From positions 827,086-891,085 of the forward strand of contig VJWM01000016.1 in the NCBI GenBank assembly GCA_010909165.1: 64,000 nucleotides of DNA, written 5' to 3'. A program made the translations under genes and the position numbers. Source of the stretch: Anthoceros angustus (lineage: Eukaryota; Plantae; Anthocerotophyta). The notes below the pieces were generated by a model. That model saw only the letters and a program-made list of their open reading frames with translations. It had not been told where the DNA came from and did no database searches. Positions 20,301 to 59,490 of the stretch are shown here, piece after piece (positions within the stretch are counted from its first letter, which is position 1; each line of letters opens with the position of its first letter).

Positions 20301-20910
20301 TCTAGAACCCCGTCCGTTTGCCATGATTCTGTTGGACTTGCCCCGGGGGTTGAATTTGGATGCGAACTCTAGGGAGTATGACACGCGGTTCACTCGTCAG
20401 GAATTTGAGAAGATCATAATGACATTCCAAGGCATCACAACGTCTGAGGTTTTTCGAGTCGTGGTATTCCATTCGCCTGATGATATGTCCATGGTTCGTG
20501 AAGTTTTGCTTGCAGCATGTAAAGGTGGTGTCACGTCGTGCTTCTGGCACAAAACTAATGTGACGGCACCCTCCACAGATAAGCTGTATGATGCAGGTGA
20601 TTACATCACCACGGGCGCAGGCTCCTTAAAGCAGGATTGTCTGCCTCAGCATTTCTCCCTCAGTGCAGCAGCTGATGTTATGAATGACGGAGGGTTGACA
20701 ACTTGCTTTGAGAAGGTCATGGAACATAAGCTATGTTACAACACGAGATGATAGGGTGGTTTCCCCTACGAAGCCCATTAGATTGTTGAGGAAGTTGATT
20801 GAGTACACAATGGAAGGCGAGTGGATCCTAGATGGTTGTGCGAGGCTCTGGTTCGGTATGGTAGCGACCCTCAAGTCGCCGCAATGTCATTTCGATGACG
20901 TAGATCCCGA
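17310..20910 (+). pseudogene. Transposon cargo: ParB-like domain plus C-terminal beta-class DNA N6A/N4C methyltransferase, frameshifted
   Basis: RKLDLAWVEALMQKM...PMVVVVD...YIFFVLGGNHS (frameshift-corrected), then ILLDLPRG (motif IV-like), CFWHKTN, SPTKPIRLLRKLIE and EGEWILDGCA/GSGS (motif I, +1 frameshift at ~20843). Confidence 0.65.
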
Positions 20911-22471
20911 GCGGTGCAATTCATGGGTTTGCGGCTCAATACGATGGACAAGCGCCAAGCGAGGAGGAGGAGGTGGGAGGCGTTGGCGGGTATGCACCCA
21001 AGGCGTGCGACAAGAGCCCATGGTGAACACATCGCGGTGGCGAGGTTTTTGTGGGTGCAGGCGGCGTGCGGACAAGAAGGCGCGATGCACAATTGAGGCG
21101 TGTCGATCCACTTTCGGCTGGTGTTGTAGGACATCCGTCGACAAGTGCAGGGGAGGTTAGTGAGAAACGCGCAGCGCACATTGGCGAGATGGCTGCGAAG
21201 AGGCTTTTGCAACATTGGGGGCGATGGATCGAGGTCCATCCTTGAGGACGAGAAGTATGATGGCCGATTGACTCTCCGGACAACTTCGCGTGACCAAAAC
21301 AAACTTGTAGCATCCGAATCGGATTGGGAGAGAGTTGTGAGGGCTAGGAAATGCAGGGCGACCGGTTGGGTTAACGTTGCTTTTGTGTTGGACTCAAAGC
21401 TTTGAGACAACTTACGTCTGACAGCCCCATGTCTTACAACACCGGACAGCCGGTGATAAAGGCATTCGGTGTCCATTGTGTCCGATTGATCCAAGCTCGG
21501 CTTGCGAACCATTTTTGTTCACGATGGCTTTTCGGGCAAGGGAGAAACATGGTCGGCTGAACAACATTGCATCAATGAGCATCCTCATGCATATCCTTCA
21601 ATCGAACACCGGAAAAGGGGATTGAGAACTACGCCACGCCGCCCAATCGCCATTTCCTGAGCACCGCGTCACGGCGCATTGGTGTGCATGAGTTGGCCCC
21701 TGCGAGGCGAGGCGTAGGGAAGGCGGTAGTGGCACCCGATTCGAGCTTCGTCCATGTGCGTGAAGTGTCATGGCCGAGACCTTATCGGAATTGCATTTCG
21801 CACATCGACCATGCCGGGCGCTTATACCAGACCAACGAATAGCGAAATGCATTGCTATAAGAAATTCGGTCTGAACACGGCCACACGGGGTCTATTGTGG
21901 TGGAAAGCCTTCGCCGCGCGGGTGATTAGTCGCGGACATGATGAATGCATTCATCATATGCATGTAAAGGGACGATGTCACGATGCGTGTACGACCGCAT
22001 TGAACCCGCAATTGTAAATAGATTGCCGCAGGTGTGTCCGAAAGGCCGGTATGAAGTTGAGATTTCATCCAATTTCGGTAGTGCAACCTCGGGCTGCACA
22101 CTAAAATGGATTCATACCATTCGCACATTCACGGATGTCCGGGTCATACAAGTCTGATACAATGTCGTCGCTCTTTTTTGGTGATCGGACCCTTAAACTC
22201 ATTTTGTGGACCTTTTTTTAATATCCATTTTGTGCGGCCTATAAATTGCATGTATCTGTCTTAAAGAATTGGCAGAAATTCATGAGAACTTGGAGGAGTG
22301 TAGACCATGTGAAGGTCTTATTACCTTAAAACCATTGAAATGCATGGTTTCATTCTTAAAGTCACATCTTTATCATGCAATTTTTTTAAAAAATTCTGCA
22401 AATTATGAAATTCAAGCTTTTTTATTTCCAGGTCCCAAATTTCACCCCCTCAAAACCAGAGACGAGGAGCC

Positions 22472-25794: not shown

Positions 25795-26849
25795 GAACCG
25801 CCTGAAGCCGGCTCTCAGAATCCTTTGCCCCGTCCTAGCCACCTCTTTCTAGGGCTTCCTGCCGGCTCCCTTCCTCCGCTAGTCCAATCCCTGCACGTCT
25901 TCCCATACGCATATCCTCCCCATGCCCACCAAGCCTGGAGGCCTGCGCTCTCCGTGCTGGCAAAAGCTGCGGCTAAACCACTCCCTGATGAAGCTCAACC
26001 AGATGCTTCCCTGAAGCACTCTCGTTCTGACGAGCACGAGCAGAAGTTGGCGGGTCGCTACCGGACGACGGGCACCAGCCTGTCGCCCCCGTGAAACGAA
26101 ATGCGCTTGTCGGGAGAGGCGTAAATAATACCTACGAGTTGTTGCCGTTGCTGGGAAGAAGAGCTTTCCTGTAAACACAGAATGACGTTTGTTGTTGCAT
26201 GGAGGCATCACTGCCTAAGGAAGTGAGTGGCTGTTGCCTGGAGACGAGGCCACCGCGACGGGCAATGCCGGTTCTCCGGTGGACGCCCGTCGACACCGTG
26301 GGCTGCACGACGTACGAAGCTTCCAGACCAGGCATCTGAAACGAGAAAACGTCGTCGCTTCAACCCTAATTTCGTCATCACTCTGACCGAGGCGGAGGCA
26401 GAGGAGAAGGCGACGCCAAGTGCGCAGGGTGGCAGGTGCGCGGCCGGCCGGCCGGCACGTAGCCATCTGCGCGCATGCAACCGTGTCTTCCATTTGCAAG
26501 CACGCGAGAGATGCCGGCCAGCGCAGTACAGTACAGTAGGTGAACATTCCCTCGTCGTGCATTCTTGATCAGCCACAGGCAATTTGACTGGTAAGCCAAA
26601 CTGATCCCAACTTCGACTATCACTCAACACTCTGTTGTTGACACACTTCTTCCACCAACTGCACTTCCCGTAGCCGGTAGGTGTGCTGGTTACCGGCAAG
26701 CTTTTGCGGCACCCACCATGCCGTGAGAGAACGAAGGGGCGTTGATGACGGATTGAGGCGAGAAATCGAGGCCGCGGCAATCTGCCACATTCAATTCTAG
26801 AAAGGTCTTGTATGGTGGACAATTACTATTGTCAAATACGTTTTTTAGT

Positions 26850-29156
26850 CTAATGCTCCGTGAGGCCTTCCAAGACTTGGAAGTAGTTCGGGAAGGTCTT
26901 CCTTACACACTTCGGGTCGTTGATGGTGATGGCACTGTCTCCGGCGGCGGCCAGGGAGAAGGCCATGGCCATGCGGTGGTCATCGTAGGTGTCGATGGCA
27001 GCGGATTTGATGTACTTCGGGGGAGTGATGATGCAGTAGTCAGCTCCTTCCTCCACATGGGCACCAAGCTGTTGCATGCCATGCGCACAAGGACGATGCA
27101 GTTTAGAAGCCAAGATGTACGTACGTGGTTACGTATGAAAGGATGGACACAGGAGAACCAGCAGGCAGCGCACCTTGGCGAGCTCAGTGCAGATGGCGAT
27201 CATTCGCTCTGTTTCCTTCACTCTCCAACTTCCAACTGCACCCAAGCTCAAGCAAAGCAAGCACATATGCTGAGGCCTATGAAAGACAAGTTTATTATTT
27301 CACAGGTTGCGTTGTTTTCGGGCTTCAGGTTTCTCACCATCTCGGATTGCCGTGGGGCCGTCGGCGAAGAGAGCAACCACAGCTAGTGTCATGGCAACAT
27401 CAGGCATGGCATTCATGTCCACATCGATTCCTTTCAACCGTTTGCCGGTGGCCTCAGAGATGGGAGCACCTGTTACCGTGACACTGTGCTCTGTCCACTC
27501 AACCTTGGCTCCCATCTTCTCCAACACCTCAGCGAACTTTACATCACCCTGTGGGCAAAGGCACGACGGCGGTCAGGACCACAACGTTGGATATGATACC
27601 AGGAAGATGACTTGGAACACACCAATGTGACCAACAACCTGGAGGCTGCTTGTTCCACAACCTTCCACTGTCACTTTTCCCCCTGTCACAGCAGCGCCAG
27701 CAAGAAAATAGCTTGCACTTGAGGCATCTCCCTCAACATACGCACGTCCGGGAGTCCTGCATCAGATTGAGAGCCGAGGCACCACCATCAGCATCCAAGT
27801 ATGAGCATGCATCAGGAAGTATAAAACCCTGAACCACTGTCCGGCACGGCAAGGGGTGCGCGTTGTACTTGTAAGTCTGTCCACCTTTGATGAGAAAGCG
27901 CTCCCAGCCTTCATATCGCTCTACTTTCACTCCAAATCTTTCCATCAACTTCAAGGTCATGTCCACATAGGGCACTGAGATGAGCTTATCCACAATCTCA
28001 ATGGTGATATCCCCCAATGCAAGCGGAGCTGCGAGAAGCAGAGCAGTAAGATATTGGCTGCTCACTGCGCCTGAAAGCTTCACCTGCACAGACAGAGGTG
28101 AGTGCTAAATCACGGCACCAAGAAAGGAAATCAAACCCATGAAGGATTGTAGAGGGGCGAGGATCAGAATCTCACTGTTCCTCCAGGGAGCCCGCCTTTG
28201 GCATTGACTGCAACAGGAGGACAGTTGGTGCCCAGTGTGCACTCCACATCTGCACCAAGCTGCTTCAAGCCCGACACAAGGTCCCCGATTGGCCTCTCCC
28301 GCATGCGAGGAACGCCATCCAAAATGTATCTGCCAAGAGCACCAACACGTGGGGTTTAAGCTTGCAAGTCCACCAGAAAAAAACAGAATACGGAACACTG
28401 CAAAATTTGTGACGTCAATGACAAGCAAAGCGTGGCACAACATGCAGACCTGGCGTTGCCACCAGCCACGGTCACCGCCGCTGTCAAAGGTCTCATAGCT
28501 GTTCCAGCATTCCCTAGAAACAATTGAATTTCTTGCTGAGCAGTCTGTCCAACGGGGAATCGGCCTCCAGAACCCACAATGCTCACTTCATTGGCTGCAC
28601 GGTCCTCGGACACATCCAACCCCAGGGCCGTCATGGCGCTCAACATATAGCGCACATCATCACTGTCCAGGAGGTTATCCACCACAGTCGTGCCCTGGCA
28701 TCACGAATTCCTCAGCTCCCAAGACTCACACCCAATTCACACCAAGGACGCCAGCAAGAAAGGGAGCAACATCCAGGTGCGGTAACAGGCAGAACCCACC
28801 TCGGAGAGAGCTGCCAGCAAAAGCAGACGGTTGGAGAGGGACTTGGAGCCGGGCAGCTTGACAGTGCCATTGATCGCCTTCACAGGCTGCAACACCACCG
28901 TCTCCACCTTGTCGGCGGCAGCCGTGGAAGCCGACACCAGCAGCCAGTGGCGGGCAGTCTGCACCCGCACCCTGCTCGGAAGCGGCCGCTGAAGCTGCAG
29001 CTGCAGCTGCTGCTCGTCCGCAACCACATTCCTGACAGCACCCAGCACGGAGCAGGATACCCGGAGCGGGCGCTGCCATCCCTGCACCTCCTGCGCAGGC
29101 AGCTGGGCAGCTCCGAGTGAAGCAGGTGGCGCCCTGAGAGCGCCCATGGCCGCCAT
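26850..29156 (-). CDS. EPSPS: Chloroplast 5-enolpyruvylshikimate-3-phosphate synthase, 8 exons, apparently intact
   Basis: Transit peptide, [83 protein letters not shown]. Seven GT-AG introns. Confidence 0.96.
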
Positions 29157-30329
29157 TCTCCACAACCTTCAGGTGTCAACAGCACAGCATACCAAATGAA
29201 AGCTCAGCACTCAGCTGTCAGCTGGATCCTGCCCTGCCCATATCAGTCTACTTGCAGCCTGCAAACACCGCCTCGTGCATCAAACCAACTCCTCGGAACA
29301 CGCCTCTTCCAATAATTCAGCAGCCGGGGAAGTACAAACACACAACCGGACACTCGGCTGCGACTGCCTTGGTGAGGTGAGAGAGAGAAGGGGGAGGCCA
29401 ATAATGCTCCATTTTCCTGCTGTAAAGATTTCCCTTTCCTCTACTCTACTCCATGTTATCTCCATGGATGCAATGTAATGCCATGCTGTTAGGACTCACA
29501 AACATCACAGTCAGAGCTACGCCACAGGATCAACACAGTTAGCAGACACAAGAAGCAGAGGCAATGGATGTCGGCTACAACAGCACCACTGGCTTGAGGT
29601 AAATAGTAAAGCTAGTCACTCACTCATATCAGCTAGACAGGACAATTATATGGTGCGCAGAAGCACTACATGTGTAGTATAGACTAGGATAGCCCTTGGG
29701 GCTTGGCATAACCTCGAGGACATGACTCTAATCTCCATATATTCAGCATCCTATATACTACGAGAAAGTAGCAGAGGCTTGCACTTGCCCATGTCTGCAG
29801 AATGAGCGGACTATGTAGGTCTCGCTGGCAGGTATCACACAAGCGGACATAGTCTTGCCTCCAGAGACGTTGCTACTTTTATTCATTCGAGGTTTCAGAA
29901 GCCAGAGCTAGCTTCTCACAGCATGCATCTTCTTCCTCTTTTTCCTTTGTCACACAGCGGCTTCAACACCAAGTTTGTGGTGTGTGGTATGTGTGTACGT
30001 AGCTCCCTTCCTAATTCAGACGTAGATACAATGCTACTCTCTACCTTGCGTGAAATTTCATCCCTCTTCTCTCTCGACAACCCACGACAAATCCTTTACA
30101 TCAATGCCAGACAGTACAGCAAGTTTCTTGTTAGCTCCAGCTGACTCTCTGAGCCTGTCTACTCCTGTGCACCTGCCTGAAGCTGCATCCACATTTGCCA
30201 CGAGGATGCATGGAGACGCCTGCTGCTAAACCTGGCTCACAAGACTGTCAAAGCATTCCGCTAGGACAAAACGAGACTGTCAAAGCACCGTGTTACGCTT
30301 CCTACATCCCCATGAGTTTTGGCAAGGTA

Positions 30330-30610
30330 CCTGGAATGGAACAGGCCTTGAGAAGCAAGCAAGAGTAACATTGAGAACTAAAATCAGCCCTTGTTGCTCC
30401 AATCTTCCATACAGAGCAATCGCCTTCTGACCCAGCCCGTGCCCTGCATTCCCAGCCATCAGCATACTCAAGCCTGACACTGAGGTCAGGTCATGGATCC
30501 ACTTGTCGCCCCACAAGTTTTGTTCAGCCACACATCTCTTGGGAACACTGTACAACAGCGAAGATGACACAGCAGATCTCGATTGTGTCCGAGCCGAGAG
30601 GGTCAAGCAC
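30330..30610 (-). pseudogene. Degenerate PPR-like fragment (also at ~42870-43150 and ~56790-57070)
   Basis: MLMAGNAGHGLGQKAIALYGRLEQQGL...VTLAC resembles the PPR consensus MIAGYAQHG.G.EAL.LF..M...G..PD.VT. No continuous ORF. Confidence 0.5.
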
Positions 30611-31336
30611 CATCAGCATGTCACCACATACAAGTTCGTGGTGTGCGAGAAGCATACATGATCTAATCCACATCTCAACAGCGAAAACTCTCTTTAGTTT
30701 GACACTTATGTAATTAGAAAACATAGAGATGAGTGATCAACATGGGAGATGAGTGATCTTCAGTTTAAAATCAGAGATGGGACAATGGCACGTCCTAAAT
30801 GAGAGACATCTCTCCCAGCCTGGGCTGATCAGGAAGGTAGAACAACGCATGCCTCGCATGTGAGAGATTTAGAAGTCATTCCACCAGCGGCACGCTCTGC
30901 ACTTTAAAGAGGAACGCAAATCTGCACTTGCCTTGTGAAATCAAAAGCTACAGCTACAGCTCTACAATTGGCTCGTTCTTTCCTCCCTACCCTCTATGAG
31001 CTAGCACTTGTTCACTAGTGAACACAAGGAGGCTGTGAGATGTTTCTTCTGCATGCAGCATGCGCACTTGAACTTACGAAATGACCAGGAAAGGACAGAT
31101 GAGAATGCACCAACCGTGCCTGGCCACCACTACTTTCTTGTGTCAATTGCAGTCGAGCCTGAACGTCCGAAATGAGTAGGAAACGACAAATGAGAACGCA
31201 TTGGAACAATGAGAAGGCGTTGGAATGCACCAACAGTGTCTCTCTCGAGACCATACCTGACAGCGGATTGAAGCTGTCATCGCCACACCAACTCCCGCTG
31301 GCCAGGCAAGTGAGCTCCGCTGGCCAGGCAAGTGAG

Positions 31337-32205
31337 CTATGGTGAAGACCAGTACAGTCCTCTTGTGAGGGTGGACTTAAACTCCGGACACTGGAATTTC
31401 TTTTCGATGCCCTGTCCTGATGCGCTTGCGACTTTGACCTCCATATCCGTGACCTTGCCAATCACGCTTGTTAAGATGCTGAACACATCTGCCGTTTTAG
31501 GGCCGTCGACGATGGCTTGCATAAAAGCTATGATAAAGTTTGCGCCTTTCTCGGTATCTCTGAAGGATTGTTGTCCAGGACTGGTGGAGTAAACAATGAG
31601 ACAATCGGGCAAAGATTCCGGGGCTCGGACTTCTCCGGCTCTCTTGCTCACCACTTGGCTCTGCTCAACTTCAGAGTCCTCGGCTTTTTTGATTTTGGTA
31701 AGGCTGTCAAATTGTCGACAAGCATTGATCACAAAGACCTTAGGCTTGTTTGCAAGATACCTGGATTCCGAGATGGGCTTCACGATATCATCATCAACAT
31801 ATAGCTTCTCGCCATTTTCTTCACTCATGACGACGTAATCTCGTCCATTTTCATCGATCCCCCCATGGCCATTAATGCAACACAGAAAGCAATCGTCGTT
31901 AGCCAGGGTAGGGAGCTTGGCAAGTCTCCTAAGATAAGATTTGACGTCCTCAGATTGGTTCACCACTATATCTGTATGGAACTTCAAATTCTTGAGAAGA
32001 GCTTCAAGTCGCCCTCTGTCGACAGCTGCACCAGGTCTTTTCTCTTCTATGCTCACAATAACTGCCCAACCTCTCAGTTTGCCTGCTTCCACATTGTCGT
32101 TAGGATAACACTCTGCAAAATGTTGTCCGCTCTCCACTGCCTGCACTTGCGGGGATAGCTGTGTAGGAGTTCCCCGACATACGCTGCTGTTTTTTGATTT
32201 CGATC
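31337..32205 (-). other. Caspase (peptidase C14A-like, p20+p10) exon, copy 1, open and with the His/Cys dyad
   Basis: GWAVIVSI..KRPGAAVD, DCFLCCINGHG, LANKPKVFVINACR, DCLIVYSTSPGQQSFRDTEKG, QCPEFKSTLTRGLYW. Confidence 0.88.
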
Positions 32206-35200
32206 CTACAACAAGTGCAACCTCAGAGCATGCAAGGAACAATGTATATTACAAATTTGGCAGTCATCCTACTAGAAACTACTTCTCGAAAACCTGGACA
32301 TTCAAACGCATTCAGATGGTTCAGAAATCCTAACCTTCAGACTCTAGTTCGGCTCTGGCCAGATCCCTTTTTCGCCCCAAGATGATATGGCCATCTACCA
32401 CGGTTGCATACTCCTTGTTGGCCTTTAAAATAGGTGGCTGGGCTTGTGTACTGGTGGAGATAGGTCCCCAAGACTGCGTGTAGTGTGCAGAGCCCTTTTC
32501 TTTTGTAGCAGCCACCTCCTTGATAAGCTTATTTGTTAGAATGCACTGATGTTTTCTGTGTCTACAAGGCGTGAGGGACACTACACATTCACGCCTCAGG
32601 ACACCTTCAACTAAGGTAACCCCTGCACAACCTTCATACGAAGCACAAAATGAACGAATTTGAGATACAATATGCTCTTGCAAGAACGATAAGGACCTCA
32701 AATAACCTTCGATGGATCGAGCTAATATATCTATGTAACAACCTATTTCTGCATTAAATTCTACAAAGATATCAAGAAACTCTGCAGATATGAGAAGCAT
32801 GTTCGGCTGCAGCTTTACGGTCGAATCAATCCATCTAACATCCTCATCAACCCAACCTTTCTCCAAACAATAGGTGTACAATAAAACCTATCACACGTAC
32901 AGACAAAAACAATGTAGACGTGGTCAATAACAGAAAGCATTCACAAACCAGCGTTGCGAGTAGGACTAAGGAAAGATTCATCTTTGAAAGAGTTACATAC
33001 TTGCAACCGAGGGAAAAATCCTGGTGTGAGAAATGTGCAATCTTGATCATCACATTGTAAACGCAAACCGATGAAGATGTAATCAGTAGAATCATCCTCT
33101 GCAGGCCATTTCAGTTGTCGTTCTGCTCCCGCTACATCTTCTCCATGCATACATAATGGTATAAAGTAACGCACTTGATCTTCTCCATCTCTACTTTCCA
33201 AACAAAGGTGTAACTCAAGAAGGAGTTGGATAAATTGTTCTTCGCTCACAATGGTCTCTTCAAGCCCAACCTTGTTCAAAGACATCTTTAGAAGCTTGCT
33301 CAACCCACACTTGCTTATAAACCCATTTTGAAGCCAATCTCGTCCATCACCAGGTTCGCCAAATATTCCAATCAATTGACTAAAAACCCCCATTCCCAGC
33401 CATTGGAGGTTAAGCACCACAAGCCCTGAAATCTCAAAATATATGATTTCCCCGGAATCCTTAAGGTACGATGCAACCACTTTCCAACTATCCTCCTTTA
33501 CCATGAAATCCAAAAGAAATCTTTTATAATCCTCCGAAATATGTGGATGCCGTAATGCCACCTTACATGTGTTATGGAATAACTCAATAAACTTGTCAGT
33601 ACAAATGATTGGAGTACCTTGTTGCTCTTCAGCCCACCTTTGTACATGTGTCCTTGTTTGCTCACAAATATTGGGAACTGGAGCCAACTTACTAACAACT
33701 CGATGCAACTTCTTCTCCATACTAGTGCGCAATGCATACACATCTTCCCAACTTTGTCCATTGATAAAAGTAGGTTCATACGATAACTCCACCAAATTCT
33801 TAAATTTTTTTTTCACCGATGACATCTCTTCACATATTGCAACAGAATGCTTATCCCCTTGAAGTTTGTCACCAAATGTTACGATTACATTTACATAAGG
33901 TTTCACTTGTTGACTCAAAGGTTTCCCCTGTTGTTGACCCAATCGTGCATTGGAAGCAATAAATTTTAACCAATAAATAAATTCTTCACTAAAATCTTTT
34001 CTATGCTTCATATCTATGGTTGAAAAATTCCCACCGAACTTGAATGGATTGTAAACAAATAAGAAGACAGAAGAATTATTAACATTAGGAAAAACAAAAT
34101 CATGAAGCGCGTGATACTCTCTGTGGCCTGCAAGGTCCCAAATTGTAATCCTTAATGCGGGAGCATCTTTTATCACCTTCACTTCAAATCCAAGTGTTCG
34201 AGGTATCTCTTCCGAAATTGTTTCGCGTTCCATTTCACCATAGTCTTCGTGTGTCTCCATCTTCATCAGAGTATTTCTTATGGTCGTTTTGCCTGAAACA
34301 AAATCATTTTAGTGATCATTCCTAACCGGCACGGAGATATGAGCAATATGCATACACGTCACTCGCTCTACATTCAACATGCCCTATGCCGCTTACCTGC
34401 GTATGGAAATCCACAAAGTACAAGGCGACATGATTTGACGGGCATTGTGGAATTCCTGCCAGAGCTCTTCTATATTCCCTGTTTTGCCGCAGCACTTCAT
34501 CCACTGCAGCACCTTTCCCTGTCTTTTCCACGCAGTGTTTTCGAAAGATATACGCTCCAGATTGGTGTTCACCTGCAGAGTCTGCATGAGCTCTCGAAAC
34601 ATATCGTCATCCAACCCCTTCCAGTCATCCAAGACCAACGTCTTGAGGTAGCGATTGGTCTGCAACGCCTTGTAAAACATCTTCGAGAGGTTGCACGATC
34701 CCGCACGCGTCTGAACTAGGTGCAAACTTTTCACGAACTGGCACCTCTGCAGGATTGGCATCAGTTTGGAGTAGTCGTCGTTATGGCTAGAGTAATTCTG
34801 TCGGACTGTCACAAGAGTGATGCTGCTGTTGTCACACATTCCCTCCAATCCCTGGCTTATAAGACAGCTAGATAGCTAAATGCGTTAAAGTGGTGTTGGC
34901 GCGCAGCATGCGGGCCACAGCTTCTCCCAATGAAGCGTCGATAGGCTCGTGGCCAGATCCAACTATGTCTAGCCGGAGTTTTCTGACAGACTCGTTGGCA
35001 GAAAGAGGCTTGGGAGCAACACTCCCAGCCTCCTGCTCTGCGTCCTGCATACCAGGGTCAATGATCGGGCCAACAGCATGGCCGTTATCCCTGCCTGCTT
35101 TGGCTTACGTCGGTTAAATCCTATCTGCAGGTACTCAACCGTGGTGTTTTGTGCCAGAGCATTCCCTATCTTCAACGCTCCCGCCTCATCCATGCCTATA

Positions 35201-37483
35201 TTGCAAATCCCCAGGTTGCGAAGTGTGGGACTGCTAGTCAGGATGTCAGCCAGGTGGGCTGCTCCACCACCTTCCACTAGAGTGTCTCCAGAAACATACA
35301 AGCTGCGGGCACTTTCTCCTATGGTCGGGTTCCCAGAAAGATACAAGCTGCGGAGCACCGAGCGGCGATTCTCTCGCAGGGCTGCAGCTATGCGACCCAG
35401 TCCATCGGCAGTCATGCCAGTGAATCCCATATTAAGAATTCGCAAGGTGCGGCTCGATCGCAAGGTAGCTGCCAGTGCAATGCAGGCTGCACCTGTTCCA
35501 AACCCACGGTACCCATGCAAATCCAGCAATTCCACTACTGCATTCGAGTTTAGACTTTCCAAGAACGCCGTTGCCTCTGCCACGGTCACTCTGCAATTTC
35601 GACGATATAGAGGGTCGAGCTCGATTGATCTGAGCGTGGGACATTTACCCATAGCTGTCATAAGGCGCTTGCTAAGGCGCAAGCGCAGTTCCTGTTCCGC
35701 CTTTGGATGTTCAACGTCCATCTCGAACAAGTACCCATAGGCGTCCACACGAGGAAGCCGACTTAGAGTAGGCGAAGGTGACTCGAGCTCCGCAAGCAGG
35801 GCAAGCAGCTCCTCAGACACAGGAACTGGAATGGTGACAACAAAGACAGGGAATGGAGTCAAAGCGGCAGACTGCATTCATGATTCAAACGTCTTCATAG
35901 TTTCAACAAAAACAACAGCAGCTTGGAAGTTGGAATGTAAGTTGTTCCATACCTGCGTCGCCTGAAGAGGTGGCCAAAGTGGCCATCGCCGGTAGTGGCA
36001 CCTGTTCCGAACCTGCAGAAGTGAGAGAAGTCAGCTCCCTGTCATGTGTACCTAGTTTTTGGGTTCTAACTTGTGAGACATACAGATGAAGGACAAGGGT
36101 AGCTAGCTAGCTTGGGGCACCTACCCTGCTGTCCAGCGCTTCTTCTCTGTATGTTCTTTGTGAGAGCATTCTGGATGTGTATCCCTTTGCCTTCACTGGA
36201 CCAGGATGTGTTCTTGATGGAAATGTTCTCCAGGACGTTTTTGCAGTTGGGTCCCAGAGACCGCATCAAGTCCCGGAACATGTAGTCATCCAACCCATCC
36301 CAGTCGTCCAACACAAGCGTCTTGAGGCTGGGGTTGTTGTGCAACCCGCGGAAGAACTCCTTGGTGAACCTGCTGGTCCCGTAGGGTTTCAAAAATCTTA
36401 GGCGCAGCTCTTCCAGAGTCTTGCACTTCTGCAGAATCTCCATCACCAAGGGATCCAGCTCCTCCTCCTCCACGGAATGGTAGTGCTCCAGAAGCAGTGT
36501 TGTGACGCTGCTGTTGTGAGCCAGTCCCGACAACCCGCGGGTCACAAAAAAGCTGGTTACGTTCAGGACCTTCAAAGTGGTGTTCGATCGAAGCATGGCA
36601 GCCACAGCTTGTGCGAGCCCGGCCTCCACAACCACACCCTTCCCCCCTGCCAGCCCCAGTACCTCAAGCCAGAGCTCGGTGATGGACTGGTTAAACGGAG
36701 GAGCAGCACTTGGACCGTGAGACTCCTCCTCCGACGAGGACACATCGCAGCTCAGGGCTCTCAAAACAGGGATCAACATTGCTGCCTGCTCAGGGTCCTT
36801 CTGCACGTTATATCCGATATCAATCCTGTTCAGAGTTCTGCTGCGAGCCACAGCGTCTGCAATCACCACGGCGCCCGCACCATCCATCCCTATCGAGCAC
36901 ATCCCGAACACTGTCAAAGCACGACAGTTGGACAGGATGCCGGCAACCTGTTGCGCCCCGGCAGCATTTCCTATCTCATTCCCATCGAGGTACAACACGC
37001 GGAGGACAGATCCGCTGTTGTCTCGCAAGGCTGCGGAGATATGCCCCAGGCCTTCCACTCTCAGGTCGAGCCCCCGCAAGTCCAGAGCCCCCACGCTGCG
37101 GCTGTGTCGCAGGACCACGTCAGCGAGTGCAGCGCACGCTTCCGTCGTCCCGAATCCTTGGATGTGGTTCAAGAAGAGGCTTTCCAACACCCGATTGCGC
37201 TTCAACCCGTTCAGCAATGCCAATGCCTCCACGTCCCTCACGCTGTACAACCCGAGCTCCCCAAGGGATTCAGATTGATCGTCTTGAGGCTCCGGCAGTT
37301 GCCGATGGCGGACATTATCCGCAAGCGCAGCTCCCGCCTGGACGCGTCTGAATCACGCTCCCGGCCAGGAAGTAGCTGCCCCAGGAACCCGCAGGAGGAG
37401 ATCTGGCAGGGTCGGGGAGACGGACTCGAGGCTGACGAGCAGGAAACCAGCTCGGCGGGAAGAGGCGGAGGCGGTTCCGCCAT
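31337..37483 (-). CDS. LRR-Roc-COR (TORNADO1-like Roco) protein with a fused C-terminal caspase domain, copy 1; several 1-2-bp frameshifts in the LRR exons
   Basis: Exons: LRR module A (37483-~36123), linker (~36012-35953), LRR module B to the P-loop (~35826-34397), Roc-COR (34292-33001), COR end (32887-32335) and caspase (32205-31337). Roc motifs: GFPYAG|KTT, RTLGFEV, IWDLAGHREY, VTFGDK. TRN1-like motifs: GLRLQCDD..FLTPGFFPRLQ and LTPCRHRK. Confidence 0.85.
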
Positions 37484-37755
37484 AGCCGAAACTTTAGCAG
37501 AGCAGGGAAACCAGCTCGGCGGGAAGAGGCGGAGGCGGTTCCGCCATAGCCGAAACTTTAGCAGAACGTGCGAGCAGGACAACCAGGTCGGCAGGAAGAG
37601 TCGGTTCCGCCGTAGCCCAAACTTCACAACAACGTCACAGCTTCTCCGACTCATGCCGAGCCACCGGGCTCGGAAGAGGCAAGCGCAGGACAACAGAACC
37701 GAGGGCTAGGACAACAGAACCGAGGGCTAGGACAACAGAACCGAGGGCTAGGACA
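37441..37755. repeat. Short duplications at the Roco 5' end: a ~60-bp duplication including the ATG (37483 and 37547) and 3 x 21-bp GGACAACAGAACCGAGGGCTA
   Basis: Read directly from the sequence. Confidence 0.85.
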
Positions 37756-38032
37756 TACAATGCCCGTAGGCTTCTATGCAGATGTCTCTGGCTTCTGGCA
37801 AGTAGGAAGGAAAGGCGTGATTTTGATTCCTCACTGCTGGCCGGCGCGGAGCAGCACGCAATGGAGCAAATTGGGCAACGTGCATGCCAGCGAGGGGCGT
37901 CGACTTCTTTACAATCACTATACATTACATTACTTGCGTCACATGGCTGCCAGCCCTTCAGTCAACATTTTTCATTCCTGCACGATGTCTGCCGAATGTT
38001 GTCGGCTTTCACGACTTTCTCTTGTGGACGAC

Positions 38033-39387
38033 CACGGCCTTCCAGCTTCCAGCCTCCAGGAAATCCTGACGTCAGGATGAAGTGCTCTACCCAGGTGGCG
38101 GATGGTACATGGACAAAAGCTTTTTATGTTGGCGGTGAATAGTAGTGAAAGAGAGAGGCATTGTAAGGGCATCATCTGGGGCGGTTCCGGCAAGAGTTCT
38201 TGTCTGAACGACTCACGGCCTTGTCTGGACCTGCATTCGATGTTGACATGGCTGGACTCCATCCTCCTCTTCAATGATGCTGGCATACATCTACAATCCA
38301 TAGTGTGCTTGATTTTTGTGGGACTGTCACGTTCCAGGATTTACACATCGATCATGCGTCCACTGCAGAAGGCGTGGGGGAGGGAATGAAAACCTGCTTA
38401 TCTCGGCTGCTTCCCACTCAAAGCCCAGGATCCTCACACAACTATTGCCACAGAAGCTCCTTGCTTCTCATCCTGCTCACAAGTTCCTCCCCCAGCCAGC
38501 CATTTTCTGGGACGAGCTAACCTACTTCGCCTCCAGCTTTGGCTGTTTACAAACGCCTGACTCCTCGCTGCGACCTCTGCGTCTGCGTCGGGGTTCTTGT
38601 TAGAATACCTGTCGACCCACCAAACTGTTGGATCCCCCATGGATCCTGTGGCCACGCCCATCCAGGCGTAAGACCTTCGATGACGAGCACGGGCACAAGT
38701 TGGCGGGTCGCTACCGGACGACGGCCTTCCAGCTTCCAGCCTCCAGGAAATCCTGACGTCAGGATGAAGTGCTCTACCCAGGTGGCGGATGGTACATGGA
38801 CAAAAGCTTTTATGTTGGCGGTGAATAGTAGTGAAAGAGGCATTGTAAGGGCATCATCTGGGGCGGTTCCGGCAAGAGTTCTTGTCTGAACGACTCACGG
38901 CCTTGTCTGGACCTGCATTCGATGTTGACATGGCTGGACTCCTCCTCCTCTTCAATGATGCTGGCATACATCTACAATCCATAGTGTGCTTGATTTTTGT
39001 GGGACTGTCACGTTCCAGGATTTACATCGATCATGCGTCCACTGCAGAAGGCGTGGGGAGGAATGAAAACCTGCTTATCTCGGCTGCTTCCCACTCAAAG
39101 CCCAGGATCCTCACACAACTATTGCCACAGAAGCTCCTTGCTTCTCATCCTGCTCACAAGTTCCTCCCCCAGCCAGCCATTTTCTGGGACGAGCTAACCT
39201 ACTTCGCCTCCAGCTTTGGCTGTTTACAAACGCCTGACTCCTCGCTGCGACCTCTGCGTCTGCGTCAGTTCTTGTTAGAATACCTGTCGACCCACCAAAC
39301 TGTTGGATCCCCCATGGATCCTGTGGCCACGCCCATCCAGGCGTAAGACCTTCGATGACGAGCACGGGCACAAGTTGGCGGGTCGCT
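38033..39387. repeat. ~680-bp tandem duplication (38033-38720 / 38721-39387)
   Basis: ACGGCCTTCCAGCTTCCAGCCTCCAGGAAATCC starts both units. Confidence 0.9.
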
Positions 39388-39731
39388 ACCGGACGACGGG
39401 CACCAGCCTGTGGGCCCCGTGATACCAAATGCGCTTGGCGGAGAGGCGTAAATAATACCTACAAGTTGTTGCCGTGGCTGGGAAGAAGAGCTTTCCTGTA
39501 CACACACAAGGACGTTTGATGTTGCATGGAGGCATCACTGCCTAAAGGAAGTTAGTGCCTGTTGCGTGCTTGGAGACGACGCCATCGCCACGGGCCAATG
39601 CCGGTTCTCCGGTGGACGACCGCCCACACCGTCCGCTGCACCACGTACGAAGCTTCCACACCAGCATCTGAAACGAGAAAACGTCGTCGCTTCAACCCTA
39701 ACCCTACTTTCGAAAGTGCGCGGCCGGCCGG

Positions 39732-41698
<1,967 letters not shown>

Positions 41699-43865
41699 TC
41701 TCCACAACCTTCAGGTGTCAACAGCACATCATACCAAACGAAAGCTCAGCACTCAGCTGCCAGCTGGATCCTGCCCTGCCCATATCAGTCTCCTTGCAGC
41801 CTGCAGACACCGCCTCGTGCATCAAACCAACTCCTCGGAACACGCCTCTTCCAATAATTCAGCAGCCGGGGAAGTACAAACACACAACCGGACACTCGGC
41901 TGCGACTGCCTTGGTGAGGTGAGAGAGAGAAGGGGGAGGCCAATAATGCTCCTTTTCCCTGCTGTAAAGATTTCCCTTTCCTCTACTCTACTCCATGTTA
42001 TCTCCATGGATGCAATGTAATGCCATGCTGTTAGGACTCACAAACATCACAGTCAGAGCTACGCCACAGGATCAACACAGTTAGCAGACACAAGAAGCAG
42101 AGGCAATGGATGTCGTCTGTAACAGCACCACTGGCTTGAGGTAAATAGTAAAGGTAGTCACTCACTCATATCAGCTAGACAGGACAATTATATGGTGCAC
42201 AGAAGCACTACATGTGTAGTATAGGCTAGGATAGCCCTTGGGGCTTGGCATAACCTCGAGGATATGACTCTTATCTCGATATATTCAGCATCCTATATAC
42301 TACGAGAAAGTAGCAGAGGCTTGCAATTGCCCATGTCTGCAGAATGAGCGGACTATCTAGGTCTCGCTGGCAGGTATGACACAAGCGTACATAGTCTTGC
42401 CTCCAGAGATGTTGCTACTTTTATTCATTCAAGGTTTCAGATGCCAGAGCTAGCTTCTCACAGCATGCATCTTCTTCCTCTTTTTCCTTTGTCACACAGC
42501 GGCTTCAACACCAAGTTTGTGGTGTGTGGTATGTGTGTACGTAGCTCCCTTCCTAATTCAGACGTAGATACAATGCTACTCTCTACCTTGCGCGAAATTT
42601 CATCCCTCTTCTCTCTCTCGAGAACCCACGACAAATCCTTTACATCAATGCCAGACTGTACAGCAAGTTTCTTGTTAGCTCCAGCTGACTCTCCGAGCCT
42701 GCCTACTCCTGTGCACCTGCCTGAAGCTGCATCCACATTTGCCACGAGGATGCATGGAGACGCCTGCTGCGAAACCTGGCTCACAAGACTGTCAAACCAT
42801 TCCGCTAGGACAAAAACCAGACTGTCAAAGCACCGTGTTACGCTTCCTACATCCCCATGAGTTCTGGCAAGGTACCAGGAATCGAACAGGCATTGAGAAG
42901 CAAGCAAGAGTAACATTGAGAACTAAAATCAGCCCTTGTTGCTCCAATCTTCGACACAGAGCAATCGCCTCCTGACCCAGCCCGTGCCCTGCATTCCCAG
43001 CCATCAGCATACTCAAGCCTGACACTGAGCCCAGGTCATGGACTGCTCGCCCCACAAGGTTTGTTCAGCCACACATCTCTTGAGAACACTGTACAACAGA
43101 GAAGATGACACAGTAGATCTCGATTGTGTCCGAGCCGAGAGGGTCAAGCACCATCAGCATGTCACCACATACAAGTTCGTGGTGTGCGAGAAGCATACAT
43201 GATCTAATCCACATCTCAACAGCGAAAACTCTCTTTAGTTTGACACTTATGTAATTAGAAAACATAGAGATGAGTGATCAACATGGGAGATGAGTGATCT
43301 TCAGTTTAAAATCTGAGATGGGACAATGGCACGTCCTAAATGAGAGACATCTCTCCCAGCCGGCGCTGATCAGGAAGGTAGAACAACGCATGCCTCGCAT
43401 GTGAGAGATTTAGAAGTCATTCCACCAGCGGCACGCTCTGCACTTTCAAGAAAGAGGAACGCAAATCTGCACTTGCCTTGTGAAATCAAAAGCTACAGCT
43501 ACAGCTCTACAATTGGCTCGTTCTTTCCTCCCTACCCTCTATGAGCTAGCACTTGTTCACTACTGAACACAAGGAGGCTGTGAGATGTTTCTTCTGCATG
43601 CAGCATGCGCACCTGAACTTACGAAATGACCAGAAAGGACAGATGAGAATGCACCAAGCGTGCCTGGCCTATCACCACTACTTTCTTTTGTCAATTGCAG
43701 TCGAGCCTGAACGTCCGAAATGAGTAGGAAACGACAAATGAGAACGCATTGGAACAAATGAGAAGGCGTTGGAATGCACCAACAGTGTCTCTCTCGAGAC
43801 CATACCTGAGAGCGGATTGAAGCTTGTCATCGCCACACCCAACTCCCGCTGGCCAGGCAAGTGAG

Positions 43866-46800
43866 CTATGGTGAAGACCAGTACAGTCCTCTTGTGAGGG
43901 TGGACTTAAACTCGGGACACTGGAATTTCTTTTCGATGCCCTGTCCTGATCCGCTTGCGAGTTTGACCTCCATATCCGTGACCTTGCGAATCACGTTTGT
44001 TAAGATGCTCAATACATCTGCCGTTTTAGAGCCGTCGATGATGGCTTCCATAAAAGCTGTGATAAAGTTTGTGCCTTTCTCGGTATCTCTGAAGGATTGT
44101 TGTCCAGGACTGGTGGAGTAAACAATGAGACAATCGCACACAGAATGCAGGGCTCGGACTTCTCCGGCTCTCTTGCTCACCACTTGGCTCTCCTCAACTT
44201 CAGAGTCCTCGGCTTTCTTGATTTTGATAAGGCTGCCACTTCCTCGACAAGCATTGATCACAAAGACCTTAGGCTTGTTTGCAAGATACCTGGATTCAGA
44301 GATGGGCTTCACGATATCATCATCAACATATAGCTTCTCGCCACTTGCTTCACTTATGAGGATGTAATCTCGTCCATTTTCATCGATCCCCCCATGGGCA
44401 TTCATGCAACACAGAAAGCAATCGTCGTTAGCCAGGGTAGGGACCTTGGCAAGTCTCCTAAGATAAGATTTGACGTTCTCAGATTGGTTCACCACTATAT
44501 CTGTATCGAACGCCAAATTCTTGAGAAGAGCTTCAAGTCGCCCTCTGTCGACAGCTCCACCAGGTCTGTCCTTTTCTATGCTCACAATCACTGCCAAACC
44601 TCTCGTTTGCCTGCTGCCACACTGTCATTAGGATAACTCTCTGCAAAATGTTGTACTCTGCACTGCCTGCACTTGCGGGGATAGCTGTGTAGGAGTTCCC
44701 CGACAGAAGCTGCTGTTTTTTGATTTCGATCCTACAACAAGTGCAACCTCAGAGCATGCAAGGAACAATGTATACTACAAATTTGGCAGTCATCCTACTA
44801 GAAACTACTTCACCAAAACCAGGACATTCAAACGCATTCAGATGGTTCAGAAATCCTAACCTTCATACTCTACTTCGACTCTGGCCAGATCCCCTTTTTG
44901 CCCCAAGATCACGTGCCCATCTACCACGGTTGCATACTCCTTGTTGGCCTTTAAAATAGGTGGCTGGGCTTGTGTACTGGTGGAGATAGGTCCCCAAGAC
45001 TGCGTGTAGTGTGCATAGCCCTTTTCTTTTGTAGTAGCCACCTCCTTGATAAGCTTATCTGTCAGAATGCACTGATGTTTTCTGTGTCTACATGGCGTGA
45101 GGGACACTACACATTCACGCCTCAGGACACCTTCAACTAAGGTAACCCCTGCACAACCCTCATACGAAGCACAAAATGAACGAATTTGAGATACAATATG
45201 CTCTTGCAAGAACGATAAGGACCTCAAATAACCTTCGGTGGATCGAGCTAATATATCTATGTAACAACCTATTTCTGCATTAAATTCTACAAAGATATCA
45301 AGAAACTCTGCAGATATGAGAAGCATGTTCAGCTGCAGCTTTACGTTCGAATCAATCCATCTAACATCCTCATCAACCCAACCTTTCTCCAAACAATAGG
45401 TGTACAATAAAACCTATCACGCGTACAAACAAAAACAATGTAAACGTGGTCAATAACAGAAAGCATTCACAAACTTGCGTTGCGAGTAGGACTAAGGAAA
45501 GATTCATCTTTGAAAGAGTTACATACTTGCAACCGAGGGAAAAATCCTGGTGTGAGAAATGTGCAATCTTGATCATCACATTGTAAACGCAAACCGATAA
45601 AGATGTAGTCAATAGAATCATCCTCTGCATCCTTTGCAGGCCATTTCAGTTGTCGGTCTGCTCCCGCTATATCTTCATCTCCATACATACATGTTGGTAT
45701 AAAGTAACGCACTTGATCTTCTTCATCTCTACTTTCCAAACATAGGTGTAACTCAAGAACGAGTTGGATAAATTGTTCTTCGCTCACAATGGTCTCTTCA
45801 AGCCCAACCTTGTTCAAAGACATTTTTAGAAGCTTGCTCAACCCCCACTTGCTTATAAACCCATTTTGAAGCCAATCTCGTCCATCACCAGGTTCGCCAA
45901 ATATTCCAATCAATTGACCAAAAACCCCCATTCCCAGCCATTGGAGGTTAAGCACCACAAGCCCGATATCTCAAAATATATGATTTCCCCGGAATCCTTA
46001 AGGTACGATGCAACCACTTTCCAACTATCCTCCTTTACCATGAAATCCAAAAGAAATTTTTTATAATCCTCCGAAATGTGTGGATGCTCTAATGCCACCT
46101 TACATGTGTTAAGGAATAACTCATTAAACTTGTCAATAGAAATGATTGGGGTACCTTGTTGGTCTTCAGCCCACCTTTGTACATGTATCCTTGTTTGCTC
46201 ACAAATATTGGGAACTGGGGCCAACTTGCTAACAACTTGATGCAACTTCTTCTCCAGACTAGTGCGCAATGCGTACACATCTTCCCAACTTTGTCCATTG
46301 ATAAAAGTAGGTTCATACGATAACTCCACCAAATTCGTAAACTTTTTCTTCACCAGTAACATCTCTTCACATATTGCAACAGAATGCTTATCCCCTTTAA
46401 GCTTGTCACCAAATGTTACGATGACATGTACATAAGGTCTCACCTATTGACCCAATCGCGCGTTGGAAGCAATAAATTTTAACCAATAAATAAATTCTTC
46501 CTAAAATCTTTTCTATGCTTCATATCCACGGTTGAAAAATTCCCACCCAACTTGAATGGATTGTAAACAAATAAGAAGACAGAAGAATTATTAACATTAG
46601 GAAAAACAAAATCATGCAGCGCGTGATACTCCCTATGGCCTGCAAGGTCCCAAATTGTAATCCTTAATGCGGAGCATCTTTTATCACCTTCACTTCAAAT
46701 CCAAGTGTTCGAGGTATCTCTTCCGAAATTGTTATTTCAGCATAGTCTTCATGTGTCTCCATCATCATCAAAGTGTTTCTTATGGTCGTTTTGCCTGCAA

Positions 46801-52599: not shown

Positions 52600-53606
52600 A
52601 GCCGAAACTTGAGCAGAACGTGCGAGCAGGACAACCAGGTCGGCAGGAAGAGTCGGTTCCGCCGTAGCCCAAACTTCACAACAACATCACAGCTTCTCCG
52701 ACTGATGCCGGGCCACCGGGCTCGGAAGAGGCAAGCGCAGGACAACAGAACCGAGGGCTGGTCTCTGGCTTCTGGCAAGTAGGAAGGAAAGGCGTGATTT
52801 TGATTCGTCACTGCTGGCCGGCGCGGAGCAGCACGCAACGGAGCAAGTTGGGCAACGTGCATGCCAGCGAGGCGCGCGTCGACTTCTTTACAATCACTCT
52901 ACATTACATTACTTGCGTCACATGGCTGCCAGCCCTTCAGTCAACATTTTTCATTCCTGCACGATGTCTGCCGAATGTTGTCGGCTTTCACGACTTTCTC
53001 TTGTGGACGACGACGGCCTTCCAGCCTCCAGGAAATCCTGACGTCAGGATGAAGTGGTCTACCCAGGTGGCGGATGGTACATGGACAAAAGCTTTTTATG
53101 TTGGCGGTGAATAGTGAAAGAGAGAGGCATTGGCGGTTCCGGCAAGAGTTCTTGTCTGAACGACTCACGGCCTTGTCTGGACCTGCATTCGATGTTGACA
53201 TGGCTGGACTCCCTCCTCCTCTTGAATGATGCTGGCATACATCTACAATCCATAGTGTGCTTGATTTTTGTGGGACTGTCACGTCCCAGGATTTACACAT
53301 CGATCATGCGTCCACTGCAGAAGGCGTGGGGGAGGGAATGAAAACCTGCTTATCTAGGCTGCTTCCCACTCAAAGCCCAGGATCCTCACACAACGTTTGA
53401 TGTTGCATGGAGGCATCACTGCCTAAAGGAAGTTAGTGCCTGTTGCGTGCTTGGAGACGACGCCATCGCCACGGGCCAATGCCGGTTCTCCGGTGGACGC
53501 CCGCCCACACCGTCCGCTGCACCACGTATGAAGCTCCCAGACCAGCATCTGAAACGAGAAAACATCGCCGCTTCAACCCTACTTTCGAAAGTGCGCGGCC
53601 GGCCGG

Positions 53607-55611
<2,005 letters not shown>

Positions 55612-57795: not shown

Positions 57796-59490
57796 CTATG
57801 GTGAAGACCAGTACAGTCCTCTTGTGAGGGTGGACTTAAACTCCGGACACTGGAATTTCTTTTCGATGCCCTGTCCTGATGCGCTTGCGACTTTGACCTC
57901 CATATCCGTGACCTTGCCAATCACGCTTGTTAAGATGCTGAACACATCTGCCGTTTTAGGGCCGTCGACGATGGCTTGCATAAAAGCTATGATAAAGTTT
58001 GCGCCTTTCTCGGTATCTCTGAAGGATTGTTGTCCAGGACTGGTGGAGTAAACAATGAGACAATCGGGCAAAGATTCCGGGGCTCGGACTTCTCCGGCTC
58101 TCTTGCTCACCACTTGGCTCTCCTCAACTTCAGACTCCTCGGCTTTCTTGATTTTGGTAAGGCTGTCAATTTGTCGACAAGCATTGATCACAAAGACCTT
58201 AGGCTTGTTTGCAAGATACCTGGATTCACAGATGGGCTTCACGATATCATCATCAACATATAGCTTCTCGCCACTTTCTTCACTCATGACGATGTAATAT
58301 CGTCCATTTTCATCGATCCCCCCATAGGCATTAATGCAACACAGAAAGCAATCGTCATTAGCCAGGGTAGGGAGCTTGGCAAGTCTCTTAAGATAAGATT
58401 TGACGTCCTCAAATTGGTTCACCACTATATCTGTATGGAACTTCAAATTCTTGAGAAGAGCTTCAAGTCGCCCTCTGTCGACAGCTGCACCAGGTCTTTT
58501 CTCTTCTATGCTCACAATTACTGCCCAACCTCTCAGTTTGCCTGCTGCCACACGGTCATTAGGATAATACACTACAAAATGTGGTACCCTCTGCACTGCC
58601 TGCACTTTCGGGGATAGCTGTGTAGGAGTTCCCCGACAGAAGCTGCAGTTTTTTGATTTCGATCCTACAACAAGTGCAACCTCAGAGCATGCAAGGAACA
58701 ATGTATACTACAAATTTGGCAGCCATCCTACTAAAAACTACTTCTCGAAAACCAGGACATTCAAACGCATTCAGATGGTTCAGAAATCCTAACCTTCAGA
58801 CTCTACTTCGGCTCTGACTAGATCCTCTTTTTGCCCCAAGATGACGTGATCATCTATCACGGTTGCATACTCCTTGTTGGCCTTTAAAATAGGTGGCTGG
58901 GCTTGTGTACTGGTGGAGATAGGTCCCAAAAACTTCGAGTAGTAGTGTGCATAGCCCTTTTCTTTGTAGTGAATGGTGACAACAACGACAGGGAATCGAG
59001 TCAAAACGGCAGACATGCATTCATGATTCAAACGTCTACATAGTTTCAACAAAAACAACAGCAGCTTGGAAGTTGGAATGTAAGTTGTTCCATACCTGCG
59101 TCGCCTGAAGAGGTGGCCATAGTGGCCATCGCCGGTAGTGGCACCTGTTCCGAACCTGCAGAAGTGAGAGAAGTCAGCTCCCTGTCATGTCTACCTAGTT
59201 TTTGGGTTCTAACTTGTGAGACATACAGATGACAAGGGTAGCTAGCTAGCTTGGGGCACCTACCCTGCCGTCCAGCGCTTCTTCTCTGTATGTTCTTTGT
59301 GAGAGCATTCAGGACTGGCATCACTTTGAAAAAATTCCGAGCGAATTCTGCAATGAGAGCAATCCGAATGCATTCTGCATTCTGGCAGGAACCCGCAGGA
59401 GGAGGGAGAGCTGGCAGGCTCGGGGAGTCGGACTCGAGGCTGACGAACAGGGAAACCAGCGTGGCGGGAAGAGGCGGAGGCGGTTCCGCC
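57796..59490 (-). pseudogene. Internally deleted Roco-caspase, copy 3: open caspase exon (57796-58664) with catalytic His>Tyr; the Roc, most of the COR and the LRRs are removed
   Basis: CCINAYGG replaces CCINGHGG. The junction at ~58970 joins the last COR exon to the intron upstream of LRR module B. Confidence 0.85.

Follow-up and report, generated by a model that had tools for sequence, protein, structure and literature searches.

The animal caspases (MEROPS C14A; for example caspase-8, -9 and -3, and Dronc) combine a six-stranded p20+p10 fold with a His-Gly and Cys catalytic dyad, and the residues of their S1 pocket on loops L1, L4 and L5 are Arg/Gln/Arg, as compared with Asp/Asp/Glu in the paracaspase MALT1 (PMC4357240). 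MALT1 (C14B-P) has the caspase topology and is activated through dimerisation, while the metacaspases (AtMC4, AtMC9, Yca1, TbMCA2) share with caspases the clan CD His-Cys dyad and the Pfam family PF00656. The absence of caspases from plants is commonly stated as a fact (Table 1 of PMC4357240; PMC10565124; abstract of PMC12521494). A precedent for C14A-type domains outside animals is provided by the caspase homologues of Reticulomyxa (Klim et al. 2018, cited in PMC10565124); as cited there, that account also gives caspases as absent from plants.

A second group of known systems concerns the remainder of the gene described here. Roco proteins, which include plant TORNADO1 and the brown-algal LRR-Roc-COR candidate immune receptors, share an LRR-Roc-COR core (PMC11378527). 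The brown-algal family is expanded and variable, and its group 3 has a peptidase of another kind, IPR009003 (PMC11378527).

A caspase-type exon terminates an LRR-Roc-COR gene

The locus of interest lies in a 64,000-nt stretch of the genome of the hornwort Anthoceros angustus (hereafter, the window; all coordinates refer to it), in which an earlier note had reported caspase motifs at 31337-32205. This interval coincides exactly with the final one of the six exons of a gene (LRR1, a 60-nt exon, LRR2, Roc/COR-A, COR-B-like, caspase), with an acceptor AG at 32207-32206 and a joint in an RNA-type run. We refer to this gene as copy 1; its parts are, in the direction of transcription:

36125..37483, minus strand: exon 1 with LRR module 1, beginning at a probable start ATG
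35953..36012, minus strand: linker exon of 60 nt with phase 1 at either end
34397..35825, minus strand: exon with LRR module 2 (Pfam LRR_6)
34293-34396, minus strand: phase-1 intron splitting the P-loop GFPYAGKT
33001..34292, minus strand: exon with Roc GTPase and COR-A, open (Pfam below cut-off; Atlas cluster; match to relative L005)
32335..32887, minus strand: exon with the C-terminal part of COR (COR-B-like), open (E 4e-12 to the pre-caspase segment of P0124)
32206..32334, minus strand: GT-AG intron, phase 1, from COR to the caspase exon (joint in RNA-type run X1, none in DNA-type runs)
31337..32205, minus strand: last exon, predicted caspase (C14A-type) domain (Pfam C14, PDB caspases, acceptor and frame)

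All five introns are GT-AG, with joints that are seen in run X1 and absent from DNA-type runs; four are phase 1, and the intron between the Roc and COR-B exons is phase 0. Exons were searched separately, and were joined solely for the counting of stop codons, with N at breaks. The Roc-COR-caspase part of copy 1 contains 904 codons without an internal stop. The Roc exon has its P-loop across an intron and a DLAG motif; its top Atlas cluster is Roc/COR-A of Streptophyta (0.95), and it matches L005—a relative from an independent run with the same LRR-Roc-COR-caspase order—at E 4e-40, while the Pfam Roc and COR-A matches of copy 1 are below the cut-off.

In copy 1, the caspase forms the C-terminal end of an LRR-Roc-COR gene, to which it is joined by splicing. 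Judged by its sequence, the gene belongs to the Roco family, of which a Roc GTPase followed by COR is the mark. It differs from TORNADO1 and the brown-algal Roco proteins in its C-terminal caspase; the IPR009003 peptidase of the brown-algal group 3 is trypsin-like.

The S1 residues and predicted fold point to a caspase

The motifs quoted in the earlier note are all present within a minus-strand ORF (31337-32242), residues 57-297 of which match the Pfam family Peptidase_C14 (E 1.2e-31). All of the best 60 PDB sequence matches listed are animal caspases, the top one being Spodoptera caspase-1 (E 1e-11); the identity to animal caspases is just 22-28%. The following features carry the argument below, together with the caspase exons of two further copies of the gene:

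about 32074-31352, minus strand: catalytic core of the copy 1 caspase exon
32036..32038, minus strand: Arg69, equivalent of caspase-1 R179 (S1 pocket, loop L1; by alignment)
31865..31867, minus strand: catalytic His126 (by alignment to the caspase dyad)
31718..31726, minus strand: Asn173-Ala-Cys175, containing the catalytic Cys (codon 31720-31718) and the Asn (codon 31726-31724) that replaces the S1 Gln (Q283 equivalent; by alignment)
31676..31678, minus strand: Asp189, putative self-cleavage site KAED/S, in the 36-aa intersubunit linker
31559..31561, minus strand: Arg228, equivalent of caspase-1 R341 (S1 pocket, loop L5; by alignment)
31339-31337, minus strand: stop codon of the copy 1 caspase exon
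43866..44731, minus strand: copy 2 caspase exon, 93.5% nucleotide identity, dyad and both Arg kept
57796..58664, minus strand: copy 3 caspase exon, 96.5% identity, catalytic His to Tyr

Both basic arginines of the S1 pocket are kept, as had been suggested: Arg69 and Arg228 are assigned by alignment to PDB caspases. A conserved aromatic residue, Phe227, directly precedes Arg228. The claimed replacement of the S1 Gln by Asn also holds, Asn173 being the residue aligned to the S1 Gln. The same Asn is found in 15 of 105 non-plant caspase matches and is thus a natural variant at this site; it is present in 16 of the 20 rows of the plant clade described below. The pentapeptide at the catalytic Cys is NACRQ in copy 1, where Gln takes the place of the Gly two residues after the Cys, and NACRG in copy 2 (as previously read); the literal motif QACxG is absent. 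The KAED/S site occurs in copies 1 and 2, Glu replaces Asp189 in copy 3, and no D-[GSA] motif of the linker is conserved across the plant clade.

A domain of this kind could, hypothetically, be a divergent paracaspase or metacaspase (C14B), with Arg/Lys specificity. MALT1 has the same six-stranded topology, and our tree contains no MALT1 sequence. The S1 residues speak against such an assignment. They are Arg/Asn/Arg on L1, L4 and L5, plus the L5 aromatic; the acidic S1 pocket, named beforehand as grounds for dismissing a caspase, is absent. In MALT1 the corresponding residues are acidic (D365, D462, E500), and here L4 is Asn and L5 Arg; in metacaspases the hallmark is an Asp at the second position ahead of the catalytic Cys (D-x-C) with an acidic S1, and here that residue is Asn, with Arg at L1 and L5. 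The bacterial C14B-like proteins that serve as our outgroup mostly have an aliphatic residue, Asp and Asp at these three sites. Of the shared caspase features, the hornwort domain has the L1 Arg, the aromatic-Arg of L5, the long intersubunit linker and the terminal strand motif; it differs from animal caspases in its S1 Asn and in being fused to LRR-Roc-COR, without a CARD or DED.

Scores from profiles and structures agree. With local HMMs, the domain obtains 170 bits from an animal-caspase HMM, built from matches chosen by this query and so leaning to caspases by construction, and just 31 bits from a bacterial C14B-like HMM; no NCBIfam profile scores above its cut-off. The predicted model (pLDDT 90.7) has six core strands with p20 and p10 parts, and was made from a 125-sequence alignment of mostly animal caspases, so that it too leans to caspases by construction; prediction from the single sequence gives a pLDDT of 36. 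The model superposes on caspases with an rmsd of 1.9-2.4 across 203-208 residues. Its Z scores are 27.8, 27.6 and 27.4 against caspase-8, -9 and -3-type chains, 21.7 against Dronc, 21.5 against MALT1, 18.5 against each of Arabidopsis metacaspases 4 and 9, 15.2 against Yca1 and 12.7 against TbMCA2, with a worse rmsd for the metacaspases; caspases rank above every C14B structure. Caspases are the only structures among the 50 Foldseek matches listed, and the only ones among the Atlas matches listed. Unlike the predicted model and the animal HMM, the S1 residues carry no caspase lean by construction.

The original classification as a caspase rather than a metacaspase or paracaspase is backed by the sequence with its S1 residues, by the HMM scores, by the predicted fold and by the tree, and none of the computational outcomes named beforehand as refuting it was seen. 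These results support a C14A-type caspase domain, with a predicted six-stranded topology, a His/Cys dyad and basic S1 residues, and we give the C14B alternative very little chance of being right.

Relatives in hornworts and liverworts

In an exhaustive HMMER search, the best matches are non-animal, with 31-38% identity; a word-indexed search for homologues of the domain alone gave no match. Among the named caspase relatives, the nearest comes from the hornwort Nothoceros (N. aenigmaticus transcripts). Further relatives include three proteins of run SRR33208241, JGI contigs, and the liverwort proteins of Marchantia polymorpha (Mp6g00860, Mp6g00900, MARPO_0108s0037), M. paleacea and Riccia fluitans (R1flu_002472). 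The liverwort members share the plant caspase clade with copy 1 and differ in being fused to an alpha/beta-hydrolase (SERAC1-like), not to Roc-COR; in the locus of MARPO_0108s0037 (L007:10001-13642), the dyad and both S1 Arg are kept, with NSCRE at the Cys. UniRef labels the Marchantia and Riccia members automatically as 'Caspase family p20 domain-containing protein'.

Copy 1, Nothoceros, Marchantia, Riccia and plant-like contigs form a well-supported plant clade (100/99), in which the fusion partners are Roc-COR, alpha/beta-hydrolase and NB-ARC-LRR. Judging from these sequences, the caspase is not unique to the Anthoceros angustus genome and is a member of a bryophyte-wide clade. The catalytic and S1 residues are kept despite an overall identity of ~30%: in the 20 rows, L1 Arg is conserved in 17, His in 16, Asn in 16, Cys in 17 and L5 Arg in 18. 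Several members have lost the dyad (three by His to Tyr, one by Cys to Gly).

The proposed phylogeny with C14A and C14B places the hornwort domain nearer animal caspases, the C14B side of the tree being bacterial C14B-like sequences only. The median tree path of the plant clade is 3.2 to animal caspases and 5.7 to this outgroup, in a careful tree that left out most of the animal rows, as well as plant rows that were partial or had no dyad; for MALT1 and eukaryotic metacaspases, the comparison was a structural one only. The hornwort domain is in a separate clade, with no nesting seen in any animal caspase subfamily. An AU test does not reject animal monophyly (p-AU 0.405), and so two origins remain for the plant clade: transfer from animals, or ancient retention. 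A tblastn of plasmids with the query gave chance matches only, and hence no hint of a bacterium as a close donor. Metagenome scans returned 0 and 1 loci.

Three eukaryote-like sequences, one of them from Tara Oceans, are the weakly supported sister of the plant clade (86/84). These proteins (P0163 and P0204, on L008 and L009, and P0131) are of caspase type, with Arg/Asn-or-Asp/Arg in S1, and may be protist caspases.

A caspase with animal sequences as its nearest named structures and Atlas clusters might also reflect animal contamination, or a chimeric assembly. Against this, (i) the caspase exon is spliced to a Roc-COR part with a streptophyte top cluster, (ii) it is co-duplicated with intron-containing copies of plant EPSPS, (iii) the region is covered by DNA-type runs of two differently labelled organisms, and (iv) the closest relatives are in the chromosome-scale Marchantia and Riccia assemblies and in Nothoceros transcripts. 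In addition, a tree of the thiol methyltransferase encoded elsewhere in the window puts the host among non-seed streptophytes, with no supported sister. Contamination is very unlikely.

The literature, with subscription papers outside the search, yielded no mention of a bryophyte caspase; nor did we find a paper on NACRG, or on the Marchantia and Riccia proteins of the clade. The plant variant of the caspase family, supported by sequence and predicted structure and with a putative activity, appears to be new, apart from the UniRef auto-labels.

Caspase genes of another order were seen among the relatives. In L002 (1855-5564 and 7538-12643), a caspase exon is joined via a phase-1 GT-AG intron to NB-ARC-LRR, giving a gene of the NLR class with a caspase at its N-terminus; its neighbours are a caspase that lacks the dyad, a hydrolase-like ORF and another NB-ARC-LRR. 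L001 has a similar order, a caspase and then a weak NB-ARC. The main survey of NLR N-termini in non-flowering plants lists no caspase class.

Tandem copies and the integrity of copy 1

The window contains a three-unit segmental repeat (26800-38200, 39700-52600 and 53600-64000), with an EPSPS copy and a Roco-caspase gene in each unit. Several of the EPSPS copies are broken; unit 2 has three LRR1-type modules, and unit 3 is internally deleted and fragmented. In addition to the three caspase exons above, there are partial ones:

59757-59913, 60146-60530, 62226-62299 and 62398-62852, minus strand: four partial caspase-exon fragments

As assembled, copy 1 is not intact. Relative to the sister copies, its LRR exons have eight frame-shifting deletions of 1-4 bases each: in LRR1 at 37441, 37398, 37359 and 37258, and in LRR2, which is 5 bases short of copy 2, at 35057, 34877, 34516 and 34450. 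The Roc exon of copy 2 is frameshifted as assembled, with deletions that differ from those of copy 1, and copy 3 has lost LRR2-Roc-COR-A through an internal deletion.

These breaks and truncations, including those of the adjoining copies, raise the possibility of copy 1 being a pseudogene within a tandem array that is decaying, which would be compatible with an active family elsewhere. Its residues G125, V137, N143 and F178 are copy-specific and are not matched by reads, as would suit decay. Other observations run the opposite way: the breaks are all deletions of 1-4 bases, four of the eight being shortened G/C runs; once the breaks are filled with N, ~1,850 codons read through free of any in-frame nonsense codon; and at 34448, 34516 and 35054 the reads bring back a base, although these reads come from another individual or from other paralogues (2-4% differences). 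The deletions are probably in part assembly errors, their pattern being one that suits long-read consensus error. We regard a pseudogene as quite possible, at rather less than even odds; copy 1 itself may or may not be functional, and the caspase family probably is.

Over the active site (31544-31897), the main RNA-type contig shows 8 differences from copy 1, and the 7 that are listed include none at the His, Asn, Cys or L5 Arg. A further RNA-type joint in run X1 (32484-35953) connects the 60-nt exon with the final part of COR-B and matches the copies without LRR2-Roc-COR-A at 58.8, 60.7 and 63.0 kb; it appears that such a shortened gene is transcribed.

Copies 1 and 2 (31340-32074 versus 43869-44603) are separated by 40 changes of the replacement type and 5 that are silent (P 0.044 against neutrality), and thus there is no purifying signal among copies; omega among copies is 2.3 and 0.9. 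Either diversifying selection or relaxation would account for the replacement excess. The linker has somewhat more than its share of the changes (9 of 36 amino acids, P 0.06).

Predicted activity and possible role

Our main reading, with a probability of roughly 0.58, is that bryophytes have a clade of true-caspase type with active, Asp-directed members, placed here at the effector end of an LRR-Roc-COR sensor. The Asp specificity is predicted from the S1 residues.

Alternatively, the clade could have caspase ancestry and fold, but a relaxed specificity (Asp/Glu), a very low activity, or a role as a c-FLIP-like scaffold or decoy. The change of S1 Gln to Asn, that of Gly to Gln after ACR, the members without a dyad and the excess of amino acid changes between copies 1 and 2 would all be in keeping with this. 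Most members, on the other hand, keep the dyad and both Arg over hornwort-liverwort distances, and the S1 Asn has its counterparts in non-plant caspases; we consider these alternatives, taken together, rather unlikely.

Under the main reading of an active Asp-directed caspase, and by analogy with Roco and initiator-caspase biology, the protein would most likely combine sensor, switch and protease on one chain: (i) the LRRs would sense a ligand, (ii) Roc-COR would bind GTP, switch and dimerise through COR, (iii) two caspase domains would be activated through proximity, possibly cutting their own linker at KAED/S, and (iv) host proteins would then be cleaved after Asp, and possibly also after Glu, with an immune or cell-death response as the outcome. 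An immune role is supported by the repeated fusions in which this clade is found with NLR-type modules. More tentatively, bryophytes may keep an active Asp-specific caspase lineage on LRR-Roc-COR, NB-ARC-LRR and alpha/beta-hydrolase sensors, running an inflammasome- or apoptosome-like pathway of immune cell death that flowering plants lost or never acquired.

With a C14A-type clade in hornworts and liverworts that keeps its catalytic and S1 residues intact, the statement that plants have no caspases becomes directly testable. Marchantia polymorpha, a genetic model, has the members Mp6g00860 and Mp6g00900, and MARPO_0108s0037 would be the easiest to test. Should cleavage after Asp be borne out, the picture of how caspases are distributed among eukaryotes, and of the early history of immune cell death in plants, would have to be revised; fusions of a sensor to a caspase would then represent a new output of plant immune receptors.

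Elsewhere in the window, 18981-20945 holds ORFs without Pfam matches, probably a transposon, and 1952-2746 is a single ORF for a plant thiol (halide) methyltransferase.
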